A DNA stretch of 11,271 nucleotides, taken from NCBI RefSeq assembly GCF_006345805.1, contig NW_021827015.1, positions 1-11,271 of the forward strand. Direction: 5' to 3'. This DNA is from Octopus sinensis. Lineage: Eukaryota. Shown piece by piece: positions 1 to 11,271 of this stretch. The stretch's first letter is position 1. Each line of letters starts with the position of its first letter. Made by a program: the position numbers and the translations under genes. The notes beneath the pieces are model-generated. The model was not told where the DNA came from and searched no databases. It saw only the letters and a program-made list of their open reading frames with translations.

Positions 1-302
1 CTATAGCCCCGGGCCGACCAATGCCTTGTGAGTGGATTTGGTAGACGGAAACTGAAAGAAGCCCGTCGTATATATGTATATATATGTGTGTGCTTGTGTG
101 TCTGTGTTTGTCCCCCTAGCATTGCTTGATAACCGATGCCGTGTGTTTATGTCCCGTTACTATAGCGGTTCGGCAAAGAGACCGATAGAATAAGTACTGG
201 GCCTTACAAAAAGAATAAGTCCGGGGTCGAGCTGCTCGATTAAAAGGCGGTGCTCCAGCATGGCCGCAGTCAAATGACTGAAACAAGTAAAAGAGTAAAA
301 GA
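1..302 (+). mobile_element. SINE family A, 3' portion (head presumably lies before the window start); internal (TA)/(TG) microsatellite; tail with CAGTC-AAAT-GACTG hairpin and (GTAAAAGA)x2
   Basis: Seen: internal TA/TG run ~69-110, hairpin 267-280, tandem GTAAAAGA at 287-294 and 295-302, a module shared with the SINE at 8393-8612, and a tail shared with 4462-4519. Recognised from memory as an abundant octopus tRNA-derived SINE (OR-type/CORE-SINE-like); family name not verified. Confidence 0.75.
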
Positions 303-303
303 A

Positions 304-429
304 TATATGGATGAATTAAAGATCTTCTGGAAGGCCGAACGTGAAATAAAGGGCCTGATCTTAACAGTCCTGATGTTCACTAAGGATTTTGGGATGGAAT
401 TTGGGACTAAAATCTGTGGCATGGTGTTG
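304..429 (+). pseudogene. Diverged R4/Dong-clade reverse transcriptase remnant (catalytic motif and downstream domains)
   Basis: Frame of ORF 250..486 reads YMDELKIFWKAEREIKGLILTVLMFTKDFGMEFGTKICGMVL. This matches the R4/Dong pattern YMDDLKL..K....L..L...V..FS.DIGMEFG..KC, with the catalytic YMDD changed to YMDE. Confidence 0.65.
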
Positions 430-578
430 AGTCTCGTCGACACTTTTATGTCGTTCTATGAACTCACTGCATTTGCCATTTTATAACGTTGACTTATAAC
501 AAGGTCATAACAATACAAATATAAACCAGAAACAACACGTAACAAACAATATATCTTCTCAAAGACTTCTACGACTGA

Positions 579-700
579 ATTTACATTATTTACATTATTT
601 ACATTTGACTGATATTTGTCCTCATCTTGTTTGTTGTTAACACAACGTTTCGGGTGATATACCCTCCAGCTTTCATCAGGTGTGTTGGGGAAATTTCGAA
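579..700 (-). mobile_element. Penelope-like element terminal (pLTR-type) segment containing a hammerhead-like motif, ending in 3 x 9-bp repeats
   Basis: Minus strand reads ACAC-CTGATGA-A-AGCTG-GAGGGTATAT-CACCC-GAAA-CGTT-GTGT (683->640). ATTTACATT x3 at 579-605. CTGANGA...GAAACGT motifs are typical of PLE pLTRs (established). Boundaries approximate. Confidence 0.5.
640..683 (-). ncRNA. Degenerate minimal type I hammerhead ribozyme motif
   Basis: Core CUGAUGA (679-673) and GAAA (651-648); palindromic AACGUU stem III with GUU triplet (646-644); 4-bp stem I ACAC/GUGU; stem II only 3/5 paired. Confidence 0.45.
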
Positions 701-822
701 CCTGGGTTTTCACTCCTAAGGTATTTTTCGATATTATTACGTAAAAACGTAGATTCGACAAAGTAGCCCAAAATCTCCACTAGCTACTACGCCGTAAGTA
801 TGGATATGAGGTTACGGGTGCT

Positions 823-1081
823 AAACACCATCCTAATTTCCGGCACGTTGACAAGAGTAAATCACTAAGCTAACCAGCTATATATGGGGTATGACGGTCA
901 AATGCACGCCACGTGCAATTAAGTGGAGAATCGTGGAGAAATACATGCGGAAATGGAACTTATCGTAGCTGAAAAATCACACATTTTATTTAAATCCAAG
1001 TAGTCCACTACATTGCTTAATTCTAGATCCGAGATTCCCAACAAATGCTAGCATATGCGAAAATATCTATTGGGGAACTGA
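823..1081 (+). pseudogene. Penelope-like element GIY-YIG endonuclease C-terminal remnant
   Basis: Manual translation across two frameshifts: KHHPNFRHVDKSKS / TKLTSYIWGMTVKCTPRAIKWRIVEKYMRKWNL / VAEKSHILFKSK*STTLLNSRSEIPNKC*HMRKYLLGN*. This matches the PLE endonuclease pattern H...F.H....T.LS.YIW...IKW.I...C.LC..EK..IL...LLN.RSEI..KC.H..K.LL. Not in the ORF track because of stops and frameshifts. Confidence 0.75.
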
Positions 1082-1255
1082 ATGGCGCCATCCTCTCCAT
1101 ATTTCGTTTTGGGATTTGCTTTGCAAGATTCTTTATATGAGAATTATGTTTTAGGAAAATAAAAATAAGAAATAAGTGGAAATTTTACTGGTGAGTGTGT
1201 GAGGCACCAAATGACTCTCTCCAGACCAAGCAGTATATAAATATATATATATATG

Positions 1256-1574
1256 AAAGGTGTAAGGAACCCTTTTGGTGATAAATAACCATGGGATTGC
1301 ACCTCGAAAGTTCCCCTCCAAGACACAAGTCTTGTAGTCGCCCATGCATACCAGCCTCTCCTGTCTTCTCTATGCCATATTATCCAAGGGAAAGGCAAAT
1401 GCAGATACAGCTTGGAACCAGTAATGTCGCCACTCATTTCTACAACTGAGTGAACTGGAGCACCATGAAATAAAGAGTCTTGCTCAAAAACACAACGCGC
1501 AGCCGTTACGGGAATCGAACTCACTCTCTCATGATTGCGAGCCCGTCGCTCTAGCCACTGAACAACGCGCTTTC
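1256..1574 (-). mobile_element. SINE family B, near full-length tRNA-derived SINE
   Basis: Minus-strand head GAAAGCGCGTTGTTCAGTGGCTAGAGCG..., degenerate A box (1555-1565), canonical B box GTTCGATTC (1512-1520). Followed by a CORE/V-like block TTGAGCAAGACTCTTT...CTCCAGTTCACTCAGTTGTAGAAATG; 3' end runs into (TA)n at ~1235-1254. Confidence 0.75.
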
Positions 1575-1789
1575 ACTACAATCATAAATAAACATATATG
1601 AACATGTTTGTATACTTAAATAGAAAGATACGTAAATGGAATTCATAAATGCCCGTATAAGCATGCTCATATATATATATATATATTATATATCAGCACA
1701 TACAAGTGTATACTTAAGTTTGTATGCACAGAGATAGCGCACACAAATAGCTATAGAGTGATTCCTAATATATAAACAGCAAATATTAA

Positions 1790-1850
1790 CGATGTATATA
1801 CAGCATCATATATATAGATGCATGTACATATATGCGTGTGTGCATGTAAT

Positions 1851-1893
<43 letters not shown>

Positions 1894-2095
1894 GCCAAGA
1901 CATATACAATGTATGTGTATGTATAGATGTATGTATATATATATATGTATATGTATGTATAGATATATATACATATATATATAGAATCAATATATTGGAG
2001 ATATAACAACACACACTCTCTCTCTCTCTCATGCATATGTTATATAAGTACGCATGTATATATACGTATAATATATATATAAATATGAATACATG

Positions 2096-2135
<40 letters not shown>

Positions 2136-2169
2136 CAAGTATTTATATTTATTTATATGCATATACATA

Positions 2170-2212
<43 letters not shown>

Positions 2213-2526
2213 TATATATACACACATGTATACATATACACTAATATAATCCACCAATAAATATTAGATGTAGAAATATGCAATAAATACATATATACAT
2301 CTATAAAACAGCTATACACATACGCACACACAGAGACACACATATATACAGATATATAATATACATAAAGGTATATGTGTATATATATAATTATATATAT
2401 ATATATATACACTATATACCTTTATGTATGTATGTATGCATGTGTACGCATGTATGTGTTTGTGTATATATTTTTACGTGCACAAACACACACACACACC
2501 CACCTCTCTCCCCAGTATATATATAT
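1790..2526. repeat. Compound (TA)n/(CA)n/(TATG)n microsatellite field
   Basis: Directly visible alternating purine-pyrimidine runs, with a short (TC)n at ~2016-2030; source of the YIYI ORFs. Confidence 0.95.
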
Positions 2527-2630
2527 TAAATGAGATCCGTTGTATGTATAATAGGCAATGTTCAGTTACCGTGCAACTGCAGCCATCTATACGACTTACG
2601 TAACAACACATCATCAGCAGCAGCAGCATC

Positions 2631-2710
2631 ATTATTGTTATTATTATTATTATTTATTATTATTGTTATTATTATTATTATTATTATTATTGTTTTTAAT
2701 ATTATTATTA

Positions 2711-2742
<32 letters not shown>

Positions 2743-2872
2743 GTTATTATTATTGTTATTATTATCATTATTATTATTATTATTGTTATTATTATTATTA
2801 TCATTATTGGTATTATTATCATTATTATTATTGGTATTATTATTATTATTTTATTATTATTATTATCATTAC

Positions 2873-2950
<78 letters not shown>

Positions 2951-3013
2951 TTATTATTATTATTATTTATTATTATTATTATTATTATATATTATTATTA
3001 TTATTATCATTAC

Positions 3014-3062
<49 letters not shown>

Positions 3063-3111
3063 TATTATTATTATTATTATTTTATTATTTATTATTATTA
3101 TTATTATTATA

Positions 3112-3168
<57 letters not shown>

Positions 3169-3364
3169 GGCTATTATTATTATTATTATTATTATTATCA
3201 TTATTATTATTGCTATTATTATTATTATTATTATTGCTATTACATTATTATTATTATTATTATTATTATTGCTATTATTTTATTATTATTATTGCTATTA
3301 TTATTATTATTATTATTATTATCATTATTATTATTGCTGCTATTATTATTATTATTATTATTGC

Positions 3365-3404
<40 letters not shown>

Positions 3405-3406
3405 GC

Positions 3407-3451
<45 letters not shown>

Positions 3452-3466
3452 CATTATTATTATTGC

Positions 3467-3503
<37 letters not shown>

Positions 3504-3508
3504 GCTAG

Positions 3509-3545
<37 letters not shown>

Positions 3546-3589
3546 GCTATTATTATTATTATTATTATATTATTATTATTATTGCTTAG

Positions 3590-3623
<34 letters not shown>

Positions 3624-3630
3624 GCTATGA

Positions 3631-3693
<63 letters not shown>

Positions 3694-3722
3694 GCTATTA
3701 TTATTATTATTGTTGTTGTTGT
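2631..3722. repeat. ~1.1 kb (TTA)n microsatellite with TTG/TCA/CTA variants
   Basis: Directly visible; source of the poly-I/L/Y ORFs. Confidence 0.97.
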
Positions 3723-3800
3723 TTTTATTTGTATTGTTGTTGATGTCATCGTCAATAAGCACATTGATATCGTTGCATGTGACAAATAAAGAACTTGCAA

Positions 3801-4317
3801 CCACCACCACCACTATTACTACTACTATCACTACTACTACTACTACAACTACTTCTTATACTACCACTAGTGATAACATTATCAATAGTAGTAGCAATAT
3901 CATTATTATTGTTATTTGTAGTAGTAGTAGTAGTAGTATTAGTAGTAGTAGTAGTAGTCGTAGTAGTAGTAGTCGTAGCAGTGATGGTGTTGTGGTGCTG
4001 GTAGTGGTGGTAGTAATAGTAGTAGTAGGAGGAGGAGGAGCAGGTGTAATGGTGGTGATGGTGATGGTAGTAGTTGTAGTAGTAGTAGTAGCAGTAGTAT
4101 TAGCTGTAGTTGTGGTGGTGGTGTTAGTAGTATTAATTGTAGTAGTACTAGTAGTCGTTATGGTGGTGCTGGTTGTAGTAGTTGTTAGTAGTTGTGTTGT
4201 TGTGGTGGTGGTGGTAGTGGTATTATTATTATTATTATTAGTAGTAGTAGTAGTAGTAGTAGTAGAAATAGTAGTAGAAGTAGTATTAGTTGTAGTTGTT
4301 GTAGTAGTTGTTGTTGT

Positions 4318-4368
<51 letters not shown>
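3801..4368. repeat. Compound triplet array (CAC/TAC)n then (GTA/GTG/GGA)n, ending in perfect (GTA)16 at 4321-4368
   Basis: Directly visible. Confidence 0.93.
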
Positions 4369-4461
4369 ACACGTACGTACATCGCTGGCGATCTGTGTGT
4401 CTGTCTACTCTCATGAAACCGACAAAAATTTAAACCTCATCACTCCAGAGAAATGAAGAAT

Positions 4462-4519
4462 GGCGCTGCTCCAACATGGCCACGCCCTTTTTCTGGTCTG
4501 AAACACATAAAAGATTAAA
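4462..4519 (+). mobile_element. Orphan 3' tail related to SINE family A
   Basis: GGCGCTGCTCCAACATGGCCAC matches 246-267 at 19/22, and CTGAAACACATAAAAGATTAAA matches 278-299 at 19/22. Confidence 0.6.
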
Positions 4520-4677
4520 GCGTAACATAGACATCAATTTTCTAAGGTTATTTCACTTTCGTTTAAATAGCCATCGATCTATCCTTTTAATTTATCGATC
4601 TCCATCCTAGTCTTTCATTATGTTAAACGTTTTGACTGTGTCTGCGGCTTGAACTCATAAAGCCGGAATTATATAGG

Positions 4678-4732
4678 CTCTCTCTCTCCCTCTCTTTCTA
4701 TCTCTCTATCCCTCACTCTATCTACCTACCTC

Positions 4733-4809
<77 letters not shown>

Positions 4810-4887
4810 TTCTATCTATCTATTTCTATCTATCTCTCTAACTCCCTATCTCTCTATCTATCAATCACTAGCTATTTGTCTCTCTCT

Positions 4888-4963
<76 letters not shown>

Positions 4964-4979
4964 CTATCTATTTATCTAT

Positions 4980-5011
<32 letters not shown>

Positions 5012-5020
5012 TTATCTATG

Positions 5021-5075
<55 letters not shown>

Positions 5076-5084
5076 TTATCTATG

Positions 5085-5115
<31 letters not shown>

Positions 5116-5181
5116 TTATCTATGTATCTATCTATCTATCTATCTATCTATTTATCTATGTATCTATCTATCTATCTATCT
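4678..5181. repeat. (TC)n grading into a (TATC)n tetranucleotide array; left flank of the Tx1 element
   Basis: Directly visible; source of the YLSI ORFs. Confidence 0.96.
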
Positions 5182-5182
5182 A

Positions 5183-6070
5183 GGCTGGGCATGCCGTGGT
5201 TGATGATGCGCAGACCGCGCTGAGACTGCGACATCTCTGGCTCTATGTAGACGACGGTGAACAGGTGTGGTCGCCGTTTGTGAGGCACGCCTTCCCCGCA
5301 GCTCGTCTCCATGACCGAACTGCAGTCGTGGATCAAAAAGAGCCCGAGGAAGGGCGAAGGCACCGCGAGTGTCGCGTTGCTCTCAAGCAACTCTGCGTCC
5401 TGGGTCGACCTTAGTGACTTCAACACAACCAAAGCATTCTATAGGGGTTTAGTGGAGGGGAGGTACGACGACGAGCTCGGGGCGAACCTGGACGTCGACG
5501 AGGAGTACCTGACCCGCCTGTTCGGGACGACTTTCGGGCCAGGGCCCATGGACAACTTCCAGAGATCCCTGGCCTGGCAGTGCTACCGAGAAGCGCTACC
5601 CGTTCGGGATAAGCTCTACAGACACGGCTCGAGAAACACGGGGCCGACCTGCCCGAGATGCGGTTCAGAGCGACGAAACCGTTCTGCACGCACTCGTTCA
5701 GTTGTCCACAATTTCCGACTGTGGGCTTATGTCGAACAACTGCTGTCACGTGTGGGACGAGTCGGTTTATCAGCTGAGTCTATCGTCAATATTGTCACGC
5801 CTCCTTCCTTCAAACGGGAAGGAAGAGCTATTTTCATCATCCTTGTGGCTATGGCGAAAGAATGTATCTGGTGGACGCGTCTGAAAGGATTGGAGACAAC
5901 ACTTTCCTCTCTGGTCAATCTCTCATCAACTTCTTCAAGTACCACTTGAAAAGGAAAGTGAGAGTAGAGAGGCAAGTTTTTGTCTAGCGAATGTTTTAAA
6001 AAAAAGATGGGTGAATGTAGCAAGAATGGCACGTATGAATGACGAAGCCACCTTGAGCATAGTCCTATGA
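5183..6070 (+). pseudogene. Frameshifted Tx1/L1-type ORF2 C-terminal region with CCHC zinc knuckle (zf-RVT-like)
   Basis: Joined frames read [18 protein letters not shown]...WSPFV.../RSLAWQCYREALPVRDKLYRHG...CPRCG/QSDETVLHALVQ/C.../LWAYVEQLL...AKECIWWTRL.../FFKYHLKRKVRVERQV/...F../RWVNVARM...IVL*. C-x2-C...H-x4-C at 5650-5705; stop TGA at 6068-6070. About 8-9 single-base frameshifts inferred. Confidence 0.8.
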
Positions 6071-6465
6071 ACCCAGAAATCGAAACAGAGAGTTGCTTAT
6101 TTGCAAAAAAAAAAAAAAAAAAAGAAATATAAAATGTGACTTCATTGACCGAGGTTACCGTGGTCTTTTCCGCAGGCTTTTCTTTCCACGGGTAAACCTC
6201 ACCTGTCCTCCCCTTTACACTTCATATTGACATTTCTGTGATAACGATCCCTATTGATCATTTTTCCTCTCCTCCCCTTTTTTTTTTTTTTTTTTTTTTT
6301 TTAACCCCCCTTATTTTTGTCCTCTTTCTCTCCTTTTACGATCCCTTTTGATCGCCCTCTCCCTTCCCTTTTTTTTTTTTTTTTTTTTTTTAATACCTTC
6401 AAAAGAAAAGCTCTACCTTGTAATTTGTTCTATCTGTGTGCAGCCCTGTGTGGCTAATAAAGAAA
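5183..6465 (+). mobile_element. 5'-truncated Tx1/L1-clade non-LTR retrotransposon: ORF2 C-terminus plus ~400 bp 3' UTR ending ...GGCTAATAAAGAAA
   Basis: GC/CpG-rich island against AT-rich flanks; ORF2-like translation; UTR with A and T homopolymers; abrupt junctions to (TATC)n on both sides. Confidence 0.8.
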
Positions 6466-6466
6466 C

Positions 6467-6725
<259 letters not shown>

Positions 6726-6728
6726 TCA

Positions 6729-7732
6729 ATTTGCAGCGTATAGTTTTAGGTCATCCATATATAAAAGGTGGCTGATCGTTTTGCCGTAACATCTACATCT
6801 GCATCCAGTTCTATATAGCATATCAGATAGAGGTGACAGTGCCAAGCAGAAAAGGAGTGGAGAGAGCGTATCTCCCTGGAATATTCCTCTTCTAATGGGG
6901 AGGGCTTTGGTTTTCACAAGTCCCTCTTTTGTTTGGAGCTGTAACACTGTCTGCCATTTATTCATAGAGTGCCCCATGTATTTTATAATTGTTGGTGCTA
7001 CTTTGTTAAAGGCTAGTGTTTCGAGGATCCATGTGTGGGGGTTGCTATCAAACGCTTTTTTGTAGTCGATCCAGGCCATACTGAGACTTTTCTTCTCTCT
7101 GTGGCTGTCTTCAGTTATGGCTTTATTGATCATTAGTTGATCTTTACAGCCATATGAGCCTTGCGGCATCCTTTCTGCTCTTCTGGAAACAGGTTGTTTT
7201 CGTCCAGGTGTTTGTCCAACTTTTGTGATGTTACTGCAGTAAATGCTTTGTACATTGTGGGGAGACAGGTTACAGGTCTGTAGTTTTCTGGTTTTGCTGT
7301 CTCATTGGATTTGGAAATTAAAATGGTTTTCCCCTTCGTGAGCCATTCAGGCATTGTCTCTGGCTCTGCCAGTATGTTGTTAAAGTTTCCAGCCAGCTTT
7401 TTGTGTATTCCTGTCTGATATTTTAACCAGAAGTTGGGCGCCTTGTCGTACCCGGATGCCTTCCAGTTGCTTAGTCTTTGCAGTGCCTGGGTGACCTCTT
7501 CAGTTGTTATGGGGGTCCGAAGTTGCTCAGATGCTAAGTTTGTTGTTTTAATAGTCCTTTTCTGTGGTTGTTCTTTCGCCGACCATATTTCTTTCCATAA
7601 TTCTTCCACTTCTTCTGCCGTTAGTGCTGCAGTGATGTATATTTTATTTTTGCCAAGTTTTTGGTAGAACTTTTTGGGGGTTGGAGTTGAACTGTTTGTT
7701 TTGTTCAAAGAAACGTTGGCGTTTCTCATACC
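6729..7732 (-). pseudogene. R4/Dong-clade non-LTR retrotransposon RT fragment (RT domains 0-5), main part
   Basis: ORFs 7133..7750 and 6726..7169 give KKFYQKL, EEVEELWKEIW, NWKASGYD..NFWLK, NYRPVTCLPTMYK, EQKGCR/GSYGCKDQL, WIDYKKAFDS, RGIFQGDTLSPLLF and HLLYMDDLKLYA, which are hallmark R4/Dong motifs. +1 shift in the G5 run at 7676-7680 and -1 shift at ~7160. Truncated right after YMDD. Confidence 0.9.
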
Positions 7733-7901
7733 TATTTCTTTACTACCCACAAGGGGCTAAACACAGAAGGGACAAACAAGGACAGACAAACGGATTAAGT
7801 CGATTACATCGACCCTAGTGTGTAACTGGTACTTATTTAATCGAACCCGAAAGAATGAAAGGCAATTTGAACTCAGAACGTAGCGGCAGACGAAATACCG
7901 C
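7733..7901 (-). mobile_element. SINE family C, 5'-truncated copy with a 17-bp internal deletion, inserted into the R4/Dong ORF
   Basis: Reverse complement aligns to 8438-8612; lacks CCGCCGAGGTCGACTTT; intact B-box start GAGTTCAAATT; flanked by TACC at 7729-7732 and 7902-7905. Confidence 0.88.
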
Positions 7902-7905
7902 TACC

Positions 7906-8003
7906 GGCGGATCCTTTGTGCTTTGGCAAGGATATCTTGTCTTAGCTTTTCTTTTATCTCAGGTAAATCTTTTTCTGTACTGTTGTATTTGCACAGTATT
8001 TTT
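7906..8003 (-). pseudogene. R4/Dong ORF, upstream piece separated by the SINE
   Basis: Reads KILCKYNSTEKDLPEIKEKLRQDILAKAQRIRR and joins in frame to YEKRQRFFEQNKQF once 173 bp (SINE plus one TACC) are removed. Confidence 0.8.
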
Positions 8004-8118
8004 GTTATTATTATTATTATTATCATTGTTGTTGTTGTTGTTGTTGATATTATTATTATTATTATAATCATCATCATCATCATTATTATTATTATTATTT
8101 GTGGTAGTAGTAGTAGTA

Positions 8119-8153
<35 letters not shown>

Positions 8154-8370
8154 TAGTTGTAGTAGTAGGAGGAGGAGGAGGAGGAGGAGGAAGAGGAGGA
8201 GGTGGTGGTGGACGAGGAGGTGGGGAGGTGCCACAGCAGTAGTGGTAGTAGCAGTGCTGTGGTAATGATGACGATGATGATGATAACTCTCTTGATGATG
8301 AAGATGATGTCGGGGATGATGGTGACGGTTGTTTGTCATTGATGATGTGGATGCTGACGATCATCATCAT
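8004..8370. repeat. Compound triplet array (TTA/TTG/TCA)n-(GTA)n-(GGA/GGT)n-(GAT)n
   Basis: Directly visible. Confidence 0.93.
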
Positions 8371-8392
8371 GGAAAGGCTTGTTAATGTAAAC

Positions 8393-8612
8393 GGCGGTGA
8401 GCTGGCAGAATCGTTAGCGCGCCGGGCGAAATGCGTAGCGGTATTTCGTCTGCCGCTACGTTCTGAGATCAAATTCCGCCGAGGTCGACTTTGCCTTTCA
8501 TCCTTTCGGGGTCGATTAAATAAGTACCAGTTACGCACTGGGGTCGACGTAATCGACTTAATGTCCTTGTTTGTGACCTCTATGTTTAGCCCCTTGTGGG
8601 CAATAAAGAAAT
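8393..8612 (+). mobile_element. SINE family C, full-length tRNA-derived SINE with a 15-bp target site duplication
   Basis: Head GGCGG...CCGCC acceptor-like stem; A box TGGCAGAATCG (8403-8413); B box GATCAAATTC (8467-8476, T>A variant); central GCCTTTCATCCTTTCGGGGTCGATTAAATAAGTACCAG. TSD AAGGCTTGTTAATGT at 8374-8388 and 8613-8627. Confidence 0.9.
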
Positions 8613-8707
8613 AAGGCTTGTTAATGTTTGTGACGGTGGTGGTGTTGGCGGTGATGATGATGACGATGTTGAAGTTGGGGAGCGGTTGTGGCTGTGGTGG
8701 TATTTCT

Positions 8708-9094
8708 GATGACGATGATGATTACGATGATGTTAATGAAGAAGGTGAAGATGATGATGATGAGGATGATATTGATGATTATGAGGATGAAGTTGATGAT
8801 GATGATGATGATGATGATGGAGTTGATGATGATGATGATGATGATGGTGGTGATGATGAAGATAATGATGATGATGACGATGATTTTGATGATGATGATT
8901 ATGATGGAGATGATGATGATGATGAAGAGGATGATGATGATGATGATGATTATTATGAAGATGATGACGATGATGACGATGATGGAGTTGATGATGATGA
9001 TTATGATGGAAATGATGATGATGAAGTTGATGATGATGATATTAATGATGATTGTGATGATGATTATGATAATGATGATGATGATGATTATGAC
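8708..9094. repeat. (GAT)n microsatellite, degenerate
   Basis: Directly visible; gives the poly-D/M/I ORFs. Confidence 0.95.
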
Positions 9095-9103
9095 GAAGTC
9101 GAC

Positions 9104-9247
9104 GACGGTGGCGACGGCAACGACGGTGGCGACGGCAACGACGGTGGCGACGGCAACGACGGTGGCGACGGCAACGACGGTGGCGACGGCAACGACGGTG
9201 GCGACGGCAACGACGGTGGCGACGGCAACGACGGTGGCGACGGCAAC
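9104..9247. repeat. Minisatellite, 8 perfect copies of GACGGTGGCGACGGCAAC (18 bp)
   Basis: Counted unit by unit; consistent with (DGGDGN)x8 in the ORF track. Confidence 0.97.
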
Positions 9248-9467
9248 GCCGGCGCCGTTTGTTGTGATGTATAACCACAAAAGAAGATGCAATCTTTAAC
9301 CAATTCTGTCCTTTAAAGGCGTGAAAAATCCATCAGAAAAGAAGAAACGAAAGCCGAAAGGAAGCAAAAACAAAAGCAACATATACAAAAAATACAAAAA
9401 TAAATTAAAATAAGAAAAAGTACAAACAGGCAAATCAAAGAAATCACAGAGAGACAGAGTCATCTAT

Positions 9468-10095
9468 CACAACAACAACAACTACAACAACAACAGCAAC
9501 AACACGTGTGACAGGAACAACATGAGCAGCAACAACTGGAACAGGAATAATAATACCACTAACAACAACTACGCTACGACCACCACTAACGACAACAACA
9601 GATGGAAACTTGAAGAACGGTAACACGAACAACAACAACGGCAGGAACAGCAATGAGAACAAATGTAGCAGCAGCAACAACAATAATGAGTACAAGAACA
9701 GCGGGAAAACAATGGCAACAACAACAACAACAGCAACAGCAGTAGCAGTATCATGAACAATATTAAAAAAAAACAGAAAGCGGCAGCAGGAACAATAAAA
9801 TTAACCACAACATCCATAATAACAACAACATTCCCAACAACGCGAGCAGTAAAGTGAACATCAATACCGAGTGTCACAACAGCAACAACAAATAAGAGTA
9901 ACAATTATAGCAACATTTGCAACGGTAATAATAAGAGTGATAACAATAATACCAACAACAACAACAACAATAATAATAATAATAATAATAATGATGATAA
10001 TATTAACAGTAATGCTGAAAATAAATAAAAATAATTCCAGTAGTAATAACAACGATAATAAAGAAATAATAATAATAATAATGATAATAATAATG

Positions 10096-10153
<58 letters not shown>

Positions 10154-10155
10154 AA

Positions 10156-10190
<35 letters not shown>

Positions 10191-10264
10191 CATGAAAATA
10201 AATAAAAATAATTCCAGTAGTAATAAACAACAATAATAATAAAGAAATAATGATAATAATAATG

Positions 10265-10304
<40 letters not shown>

Positions 10305-10330
10305 TGATGATGATAATAATAGTTGTAGTA
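9468..10330. repeat. Degenerate (ACA/GCA)n region grading into (TAA/TGA)n, with an internal ~177-bp duplication
   Basis: Directly visible; 34-bp identical anchor at 10016-10049 and 10193-10226. Confidence 0.9.
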
Positions 10331-10559
10331 TTGATAACAATAAGAGCAACAAGTAAATGATGAAGGAGAGAGATAATAAAAATAAAGAGAAGAGCGTAAA
10401 ATGGCAAGAGATGAAAACAATTCGAAAATAACAATATTAACGGCAACAACAATAGCAATAAGAACAACAACACCAAAGACAGCATGTAAAAATTATTGAT
10501 GGAATCTGAAATCTGAGTAAAAGTTGCGTATTACAGCGAGCGGGTTTGTGGAGTGGTTT

Positions 10560-11271
10560 GGGACGAAGGGCAAGCGGCGGATGCGGATGCGGATTCGAAG
10601 TGTGGCGGCGGTGTGGTGGTGGTGGTGGTGGGGGAGGTGCTGGAGTGGAGATGGTGGGGATGGGATGGCGGGCGGGCGGGCAGGCGAGCAGAAGGGAAGT
10701 GATGGTGGTGGTGGTGTTGGAGCGGAGACGTGGAGATGGGCTGGCGGGTAGGCGAGCAGAAGGGAAGTGATGGTGGTGATGATGAAGAGGCGGTGGTGCT
10801 GGATTGGAGAAGGTGGGGATGGGATGGCGGGCAGAAGGAAAGTGGTGGTGGTACGGAAGTGATGATGGTGATGCTGAAGAGGCGGTGCTGGTGGTTACAA
10901 GAAGGGGCGGCGTCGGAGTGGTAGGAAGTGGTGGCGGGGAAAAGCGGTGGCCAAGAGGGATGATCGAAACAGCACCAGGGTGGATGATGAGGCGGGGTTT
11001 TAAAACGGCGATGGTGACAAACGGTGGTGTTGGCAAACACCGGTGTTCGTGGAGGTGGCGGCACGAATTGTAAGTGGTGGTTGGGTGTAGGGCTTGGAGG
11101 AATGAGGCGGATGCGTGTGTGGAAGGGGTGGTGGTGAGAGGAGTGTGTGGAGGAGGCGGAATGGAAACGGTGGAAGGGCGGCGGTGGTGGAAGATCGAGG
11201 CGTTGATGGATGAGGATGATGGTAAAACGACTTCGTGGCCGAAGCGGTGGTGGTTGGAGATGAGGGCGGGA
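10560..11271. repeat. G-rich, strand-asymmetric low-complexity region with mosaic tandem duplications
   Basis: GGT/GGA/GGC-rich top strand; 38-bp block at 10636-10673 and 10795-10832 (36/38 identical); 29-bp block at 10682-10710 and 10750-10778 (identical). Confidence 0.8.

Follow-up and report, generated by a model that had tools for sequence, protein, structure and literature searches.

Which LINE (long interspersed nuclear element) moves the SINEs (short interspersed nuclear elements) of octopods? The question is raised by an 11,271-nucleotide (nt) stretch of the Octopus sinensis genome (assembly GCF_006345805.1, contig NW_021827015.1, positions 1 to 11,271, forward strand), in which a decayed LINE and two copies of a SINE family, here called SINE C, share their 3' ends. 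This whole stretch is referred to as the window, and positions given without a locus name are positions within it. That SINEs borrow the tails of LINEs has been a textbook principle since 1996; the octopod pair is therefore a new instance and not a new mechanism. We conclude that the dead copy of an L1-superfamily LINE and the two SINEs with homologous ends probably represent a stringent-type SINE/LINE tail partnership. The elements that carry this conclusion are the following.

5183 to 6070, plus strand: C-terminal part of open reading frame 2 (ORF2) of the LINE, 5'-truncated and decayed, recognized by three-frame translation and homologues.

6071 to 6465, plus strand: 3' untranslated region (UTR) of the LINE, of which 6144-6203 aligns at 87% with the 3' UTR of an independent copy, L001.

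6416 to 6465, plus strand: shared 3' tail module of the LINE, recognized by its matches to the SINE tails and by the same tail on LINE ends from Argonauta and from Logan assemblies.

7734 to 7904, minus strand: SINE C copy A, 5'-truncated, delimited by alignment to copy B, with its tail at about 7734-7783 and its hairpin at 7745-7757.

8389 to 8612, plus strand: SINE C copy B, full length (224 bp), ending in ...AATAAAGAAAT, with its tail at about 8563-8612 and its hairpin at 8589-8601.

The core of the similarity consists of the last 33 nt of the LINE (6433-6465, TCTGTGTGCAGCCCTGTGTGGCTAATAAAGAAA). Without gaps, this 33-mer matches SINE C copy A at 27 of 33 positions (7735-7767, minus strand) and copy B at 26 of 33 (8579-8611, plus strand), and the two SINE tails agree with each other at 30 of 33. 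The first-pass annotation had reported the same matches, and its sequences and counts were reproduced exactly on recheck. The upstream extension that it had described is seen as a 50-nt local alignment between the LINE and copy A with one 3-nt gap (CCTTGT...TTTGT; z = 13.0). For copy B, the ungapped 33 nt yield a local alignment with z = 8.7. No further 33-mer on either strand of the whole window matches the LINE tail at ≥ 20/33. The shared tail was also looked for on the other SINE-like elements of the window and was absent there, which argues that it is specific. When the exact 19-base core CCCTTGTGGNNAATARAGAAA was scanned across the entire metagenome collection of the Joint Genome Institute (JGI), only 11 matches were obtained, all in unrelated prokaryote-like contexts; the tail core is therefore rare outside octopods.

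A and T prevail at both ends, each of which includes a polyadenylation-like AATAAA, and a similarity of this kind might reflect chance or low complexity. With so many A residues, the final 10 nt (AATAAAGAAA) could be fitted to many sequences, a caveat that the first-pass annotation had raised. The first 23 nt match the SINE tails at 18/23 and 16/23 on their own, a level of ≥ 17/23 being reached by only one of 200,000 shuffles of this part. For the complete 33-mer, none of 5000 shuffled versions scored ≥ 25/33 anywhere in the window, and none of 200,000 reached ≥ 26/33 in the end-to-end register. The same pairing was found independently in Argonauta, as described below. The shuffles and this replication effectively refute a chance match, to which we attach a negligible probability.

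The position of the match was assessed from the flanks of the copies. For the LINE, these are:

4693 to 5182, no strand: (TCTA)n microsatellite, upstream flank of the LINE (Tandem Repeats Finder).

6468 to 6727, no strand: (TCTA)n-type microsatellite, downstream flank of the LINE, belonging to the same array as 4693-5182 (Tandem Repeats Finder).

The LINE fragment (5183-6465) is thus bracketed by a single (TCTA)n array and ends at about position 6465, where the array resumes. SINE C copy B abuts a perfect 15-bp target-site duplication, AAGGCTTGTTAATGT, present at 8374-8388 and 8613-8627. The tail matches consequently lie at the extreme 3' ends, as had been proposed, whereas the start of copy B had been placed at 8393 and is corrected here to 8389. 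Poly(A) is absent from the inserted copies: the SINEs end in ...AATAAAGAAAT and the LINE in ...AATAAAGAAA. Compared to copy B, copy A misses about 48 nt at its 5' end and carries a 17-bp internal deletion and a 10-bp insertion. It sits in the reading frame of an unrelated LINE, which runs up to ...AKAQRIRR and resumes past the insertion with YEKRQRFFEQNK...

SINE C is short, non-coding and multi-copy, with a target-site duplication, and its body and tail have homologues in several Argonauta copies. ARAGORN detected no tRNA anywhere in the window, and Rfam gave no match to the SINE C region (8380-8620) even at E ≤ 10. Box-like motifs in its head are discerned by eye only. A short Argonauta SINE with the shared tail has a sub-threshold tRNA match in its head (21.8 bits, E = 0.087). 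Known octopus SINEs comprise the OK, OR1 and OR2 families (Ohshima & Okada 1994, as cited in PMC4758252 and PMC4824008) and the 'tRNA-Core/tRNA-Deu' SINEs of RepeatModeler surveys (PMC8967140). They are abundant in octopus and have heads with boxes like those of RNA polymerase III (Pol III) promoters, to which the motifs discerned in SINE C may correspond. SINE C probably belongs to one of these groups or is a relative.

Another SINE-like element lies at about 1262-1570 on the minus strand. To the eye, its head (GTTCAGTGGCTAGAGC...GTTCGATTCCCG) plainly resembles a tRNA; neither ARAGORN nor Rfam called it. Its tail, ...GGTTATTTATCACCAAAAGGGTTCCTTACA, differs from the shared one, and this element is presumably served by another LINE.

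Next to the SINEs, the LINE itself has relatives. Its ORF2 remnant in the window shows at least five frame changes, a stop codon at 6068-6070 and a zf-RVT-type motif (CPRCGSE...ETVLHALVQ) at 5650-5701. Pfam did not recognize the fragment itself; its homologues P0001-P0008 carry PF13966 (zf-RVT). Relatives are found in Octopus bimaculoides (95% identity over a short stretch) and in Argonauta hians (53% amino-acid identity). From these protein relatives, the window would be placed as octopod DNA, probably of Octopus. In A. hians, four homologous LINE 3' ends at two loci, L004 and L008, finish with ...TCTATGTTTTGCCCTTGTGGCTAATAAAAGAA, their tails being located at L004 7168-7188, L004 827-847, L008 2616-2636 and L008 8633-8653. 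More precisely, a near-full-length LINE (L004, about 1363-7195) ends in ...TCTATGTTTTTGCCCTTGTGGCTAATAAAAGAAATAATTATT, a heavily truncated 3' UTR fragment (L004 827-847) in ...GGACCCTTGTGGTCAATAAAAGAATTATT, and both L008 ends in ...TTTTGCCCTTGTGGCTAATAAAAGAATTAATTATT. Locus L008 contains three LINE copies arranged head to tail with (ATT)n alone between them, and the middle copy has an intact ORF2 of 1160 codons. A third lineage, about 55% identical in protein, was found in Logan contigs (assemblies of public sequencing runs; L020/L021) and ends in ...TTTAACCCTTGTGGTTTGAATAAA where the contigs stop. The closest relative of the window copy, L001 (73% protein identity), follows the window 3' UTR collinearly and has entered the tail where its contig breaks off, and L003 has a degenerate version of the tail.

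Three lineages provided complete LINE tails, namely those of the window, of Argonauta L004/L008 and of Logan L020; the sample of seven LINE ends is small. The LINE copies of L028 (P0005) and L024-L027 (P0008) are 3'-truncated or lie on contigs that stop short of the tail. Between lineages, the last 32 nt are 64-82% identical versus 50-56% for the preceding 100 nt of 3' UTR, the latter range being about the floor for such alignments; the ORF2 C-termini of the compared lineages are 53-55% identical to that of the window. Because independent copies end in the tail and its identity exceeds that of the upstream UTR, the tail belongs to the conserved end of the LINE lineage and is no accident of a single copy. 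LINE copies with a different end had been named in the first-pass annotation as evidence that would speak against the pairing; the four Argonauta ends, L020/L021 and the collinear L001 show the contrary.

The SINE side of the pairing recurs in Argonauta as well. Within the 12.8 kb of locus L004, SINE-type tails of the form ...TCTGTGTTCGGCCCTTGTGGCTAATAGAGAAATCT occur 14 times, attached to at least two head families. The long SINE of this locus has a body homologous to that of SINE C. A short SINE (about 155 bp) is present in three copies at L004 893-1362, head to tail without spacer and each ending in the shared tail; this trio adjoins the 5' end of the near-full-length LINE. New insertions may thus favour the end of an existing tail. 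Alignment of the last 24-56 nt (approximately) of the Argonauta LINE with Argonauta SINE tails resulted in z = 7.7-15.9. A second genome thus shows the same pairing of LINE and SINE tails within itself.

The same arrangement bears on a different explanation for the window, namely that 6410-6465 is a separate, heavily 5'-truncated SINE fragment beside the LINE copy. SINEs of this group do insert head to tail at tails, as the tandem trio illustrates, and 5'-truncated SINE copies exist, copy A being one. The four Argonauta ends and L020/L021, however, carry the tail at the same place relative to a homologous 3' UTR, and L001 runs collinearly with the window UTR into it. The tail variants are, moreover, specific to LINE lineages (e.g. 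GACC...GGUC and AACC...GGUU). The independent LINE ends and the collinearity of L001 contradict a separate SINE fragment, which we consider very improbable.

Within the shared tail, a small hairpin can be drawn.

6442 to 6455, plus strand: candidate tail hairpin AGCC-CUGUGU-GGCU, followed by AAUAAAGAAA (6456-6465), from the minimum-free-energy fold.

The minimum-free-energy folds contain the two hairpins that had been pointed out before, AGCC-CUGUGU-GGCU in the LINE and GCCC-CUUGU-GGGC in the SINEs. The loop of the window LINE has 6 nt versus the 5-nt CUUGU of most other tails. In an alignment of 22 LINE and SINE tails (alignment A2), 84% of the cells of the 4-bp stem around the near-invariant CUUGU are paired. 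Shuffles gave 77.6%, with none of 500 reaching the observed value, and slid controls remained at ≤ 50%. Pair 15-25 is G-C in Argonauta, C-G in the window SINEs and A-U in two LINE lineages. A hairpin is also found in a more distant LINE family from ENA assembly ERZ21867824 (L006, L007, L029-L038), 38-39% identical in ORF2 to the Argonauta element. Its tail reads AAGGC-CUCGU-GCCUU, or the variant AGGC-CUUGU-GCCU, before AAAUAAAGUU. The tail of this family has a second hairpin (CUUUGUA-CUU-ACAAAG or CCUGU-GAAUCU-ACAGG), and between two subfamilies the first and the second hairpin each covary. Taken together, the tail hairpin is plausible but unproven as a real structure.

The family of ERZ21867824 has features of its own. 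Its protein cluster counts hundreds of near-identical members, and tandem arrays occur. Insertion is always at one repeated site, between ...AAATAAAGTT and AAGTTAACTCCAGCC... (AAGTT/AAGTTAACTCCAGCC).

The tail could also act in a less demanding way, as an A-rich priming or annealing site that substitutes for poly(A), or as a polyadenylation or stability signal. On this reading, the LINE would show the 'relaxed' recognition of mammalian L1, and shared ancestry alone would account for the similarity further upstream. The weak thermodynamics of the hairpin, for which RNAalifold finds nothing, agree with this, as does the presence of AAUAAAG in the most invariant part of the tail. Crocodilian SINEU elements, which have been attributed to Tx1 LINEs, have poly(A) tails (PMC4494074). 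The inserted octopod copies, on the other hand, lack poly(A), and the non-A-rich half of the tail, including the CUUGU loop, is near-invariant across SINE families and LINE lineages. Stem positions show compensatory changes, and the tail is conserved well above the adjoining UTR. We therefore deem relaxed recognition rather unlikely.

To which clade does the LINE belong? The ORF2 of the Argonauta LINE at L004 contains the Pfam domains Exo_endo_phos (1.4e-10), RVT_1 (1.4e-24) and zf-RVT (1.3e-7). The window fragment keeps the C-terminal zf-RVT part alone, and the domain set is thus read from its Argonauta homologue. Among solved structures, the best match of the Argonauta ORF2 is human L1 ORF2p (E = 1e-47; residues 6-865, from endonuclease to thumb), with R2 well behind (4e-20). 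The set of endonuclease, reverse transcriptase and zf-RVT domains and this best match place the LINE lineage in the L1 superfamily, as judged from protein comparison. Its place in the Tx1 clade is circumstantial. An open reading frame 1 (ORF1) with RRM/CCHC zinc-knuckle domains, as opposed to the mammalian Transposase_22, has been used as a criterion for Tx1 (PMC5203782). The Argonauta ORF1 contains the CCHC-like CHRCGLPGHIRSGC, for which the Pfam zf-CCHC score is only 0.062, below threshold, and gave no match to Transposase_22. Octopus L1-like LINEs have been annotated as L1-Tx1 (PMC13282606, PMC8967140), while the database names and cluster members of the relatives held no informative Tx1 label. 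The Tx1 label is suggested indirectly by these octopus annotations, an ORF1 apparently of the zinc-knuckle kind and the occurrence of copies in microsatellites or tandem arrays. Of the original proposal of a Tx1/L1-clade LINE as the partner, the L1 part is consequently carried by the domains and the Tx1 part by circumstance.

Every LINE end of the lineage that was seen (n = 5) lies in or beside a microsatellite: (TCTA)n in the window, and (ATT)n following the four Argonauta ends, at these positions:

L004 7189-7205 and 848-895; L008 2637-2680 and 8654-8670: (ATT)n flanks of the Argonauta LINE ends.

Directly after each Argonauta tail comes either (ATT)n or the start of the next LINE. These five ends hint that the LINE lineage may target microsatellites or its own tail, in the manner of Kibi/Koshi-type Tx1 elements.

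How, then, might the partnership operate? The shared module approximates YCURUGUU-N-(4-bp stem, CUUGU loop)-AAUARAGAAAU without poly(A). The ORF2 protein, with its endonuclease, its reverse transcriptase and its C-terminal CCHC domain, is proposed to recognize, in the RNA that encodes it, either the sequence of this end or the small stem-loop. It would start target-primed reverse transcription at the tail module and not on poly(A). SINE RNAs transcribed by Pol III that have acquired the tail could then be picked up in trans and inserted, which would yield 13-16-bp target-site duplications and occasional 5' truncation. Consistent with such a mechanism are the lack of poly(A), the 13-16-bp target-site duplications (by eye), the 5'-truncated SINE and the head-to-tail arrays of SINEs and LINEs. 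The tail anatomy in two genera thus supports the earlier suggestion that the SINE family is or was mobilized by the LINE via a shared non-poly(A) tail.

Several points weigh against this interpretation. The trans-mobilization of the SINE, the recognition of the tail by the protein and the role of the hairpin are all read from anatomy alone, which for trans-mobilization and stringent recognition is also the case in most SINE/LINE pairs published so far. Because the loop of the window LINE counts 6 nt, one pair is broken in the gap-free register. RNAalifold predicted no consensus structure for the 22-tail alignment, and the single-sequence folding energies were not better than those of shuffles (z = +0.3 to -1.8). 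A single Argonauta locus of 12.8 kb supplied most SINE tails of the covariation set, many of them related by descent. The Tx1 label is built on indirect points. In addition, the LINE ends lie in or by microsatellites and the SINE copies not obviously so, which leaves a shared target preference of SINE and LINE unsupported. Finally, the 3' ends of octopus RTE, CR1, Dong-R4, L2, Hero and R2 LINEs fell outside the comparison.

This last point leads to the possibility that the tail is shared, with a LINE of another clade as the mobilizer of the SINE, either because that LINE carries the module itself or because it donated the tail by template switching. SINEs and LINEs are known to exchange tails (Kojima 2018, PMC5786205; Nishihara 2016, PMC4824008), and octopus genomes contain active RTE, CR1, Dong-R4, Hero and R2 families (PMC13282606). 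Among the sequences compared, which included no cephalopod repeat library, nothing points to a better match of the SINE with a non-Tx1 LINE end. A related tail of hairpin plus AAAUAAAG is nevertheless present in the LINE family that is 38-39% identical in ORF2, which indicates that the tail is ancestral to the LINE lineage rather than borrowed. Furthermore, the Argonauta copy with an intact ORF2 itself ends in the tail, which is therefore where the reverse transcriptase of this copy has to prime. Another clade as mobilizer accordingly seems improbable to us.

The partnership of the L1-superfamily LINE with SINE C may be part of something larger. Since several octopod SINE families with different heads have the same tail, the LINE lineage is likely, on the evidence of these tails, to be the autonomous partner behind much of the octopod SINE expansion. 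In its full extent, the proposal would be that of an animal L1/Tx1 LINE with poly(A)-independent recognition of a 4-bp stem/CUUGU loop plus AAUAAAGAAAU, which would serve several octopod SINE families as their partner and so have driven the SINE expansion specific to octopus, with an old hairpin shared with LINE families about 38% identical in ORF2. We put this complete picture forward tentatively, being slightly more inclined to doubt than to accept it as a whole.

The remainder of the window provides the context of these elements. The 3' UTR of the window LINE contains an internal duplication of about 57 nt (6244-6300 and 6338-6391, 84% identity) with a long poly-T run in each unit, and a poly-A run at 6105-6127. 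The duplication and the runs likely arose by slippage and expansion after insertion. Downstream of the LINE and its microsatellite, the following element is found:

6726 to 7733, continuing at 7905-7960 beyond SINE C copy A, minus strand: reverse-transcriptase fragment of an unrelated LINE (Pfam RVT_1, 2.7e-13).

Its closest relatives, in insects and crustaceans, are at most 56% identical, and the protein search returned no Octopus contigs with this reverse transcriptase. This minus-strand LINE stands outside the SINE/LINE partnership and is context only.

Simple repeats are exceptionally dense in the window (1849-2238, 2631-3729, 3918-4368, 8707-9093, 9102-9252 and 9926-10321). They include a 1.1-kb (ATT)n array, (AT)n, (GTA)n, (TGA)n and (TAA)n arrays, and an 18-bp minisatellite, ACGACGGTGGCGACGGCA, of 8.4 copies with 99% matches. 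All Rfam microRNA matches of the window fall in low-complexity repeat tracts below gathering scores and are false positives. The segments 240-300 (GGTGCTCCAGCATGGCCGCAGTCAAATGACTGAAAC...) and 4455-4520 (GGCGCTGCTCCAACATGGCCACGCCC...CTGAAACAC) are alike by eye, a likeness absent from the BLAST self-comparison. Both may be what is left of an additional repeat family whose end is rich in AAAAG.

SINEs make up 11.6% of the O. vulgaris genome (PMC13282606) and about 40% of the transposable-element content of octopus (PMC8967140). In literature, octopus SINEs have been tied to genome reshuffling and to neural transcripts, and the latest annotation leaves 893 of 900 recently active SINE families 'unclassified'. 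The octopus and cephalopod repeat literature that was searched names neither a partner LINE for octopus SINEs nor this tail, with Repbase, Dfam and the original OK/OR1/OR2 consensus sequences lying outside that search. The shared tail hence offers a concrete, testable candidate for the partner LINE and a simple tail-based rule for classifying octopus SINEs.

Among known systems, the proposed recognition resembles that of the L2 clade, i.e. eel UnaSINE1/UnaL2 (Kajikawa & Okada 2002, as cited in PMC3747384) and zebrafish ZfL2-1/ZfL2-2 (Hayashi 2014, PMC4176376). In these, as would be the case here, the ORF2 protein binds a conserved 3' stem-loop and a SINE with the same tail is moved in trans. 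The L2 systems are experimentally proven and have a longer stem-loop and short tandem repeats at their ends, whereas the octopod hairpin measures about 4 bp and is known from sequence. With respect to integration, Kibi, Koshi and the crocodilian Tx1 elements that target (TTCC)n/(TTTC)n are microsatellite-specific (Kojima & Fujiwara 2004, as cited in PMC4494074). The octopod LINE copies similarly lie in or by microsatellites and form head-to-tail arrays, a hint from five ends only, and their units, (TCTA)n and (ATT)n, differ from those of the known Tx1 target families.

An animal SINE group has been attributed to a Tx1-clade LINE before, in the case of crocodilian SINEU and Tx1-Mar (Kojima 2015, PMC4494074), the Tx1 assignment being circumstantial for the octopod LINE. 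That partnership was proposed from a shared target preference, which the LINE partner Tx1-Mar shows, and from shared 5' parts. SINEU has poly(A) ends and no specific shared 3' tail as its basis, whereas the octopod pair is defined by a shared non-poly(A) 3' tail.

Specific tails are scarce among L1-clade LINEs, which occur in only 3 of 58 SINE/LINE pairs (Ohshima 2012, PMC3472496; review PMC3747384); this agrees with the first-pass description of the octopod case as a less common pairing. The three pairs are ZmSINE2 and ZmSINE3 of maize/sorghum with LINE1-1_ZM, and SINEX-3_CR of Chlamydomonas with L1-1_CR, all poly(A)-ended (PMC3472496, PMC3747384) and interpreted as stringent recognition within the L1 clade (PMC3472496, PMC3747384). 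As in the octopod pair, the SINE has a 3'-terminal stretch (about 45-80 nt in the plant and algal pairs) in common with an L1-clade LINE, whose tail is far better conserved than its other parts. The plant and algal tails also have a small stem-loop with compensatory changes, to which the octopod hairpin may correspond. The plant and algal elements end in poly(A), whereas the octopod LINE and SINE copies combine an animal host, an apparently Tx1-like LINE, the absence of poly(A) and several SINE families. The octopod pair would thus bring an animal into the small group of L1-clade LINEs with an apparent need for a specific 3' tail, a group of importance for the question of whether the L1 superfamily had stringent recognition as its ancestral state.

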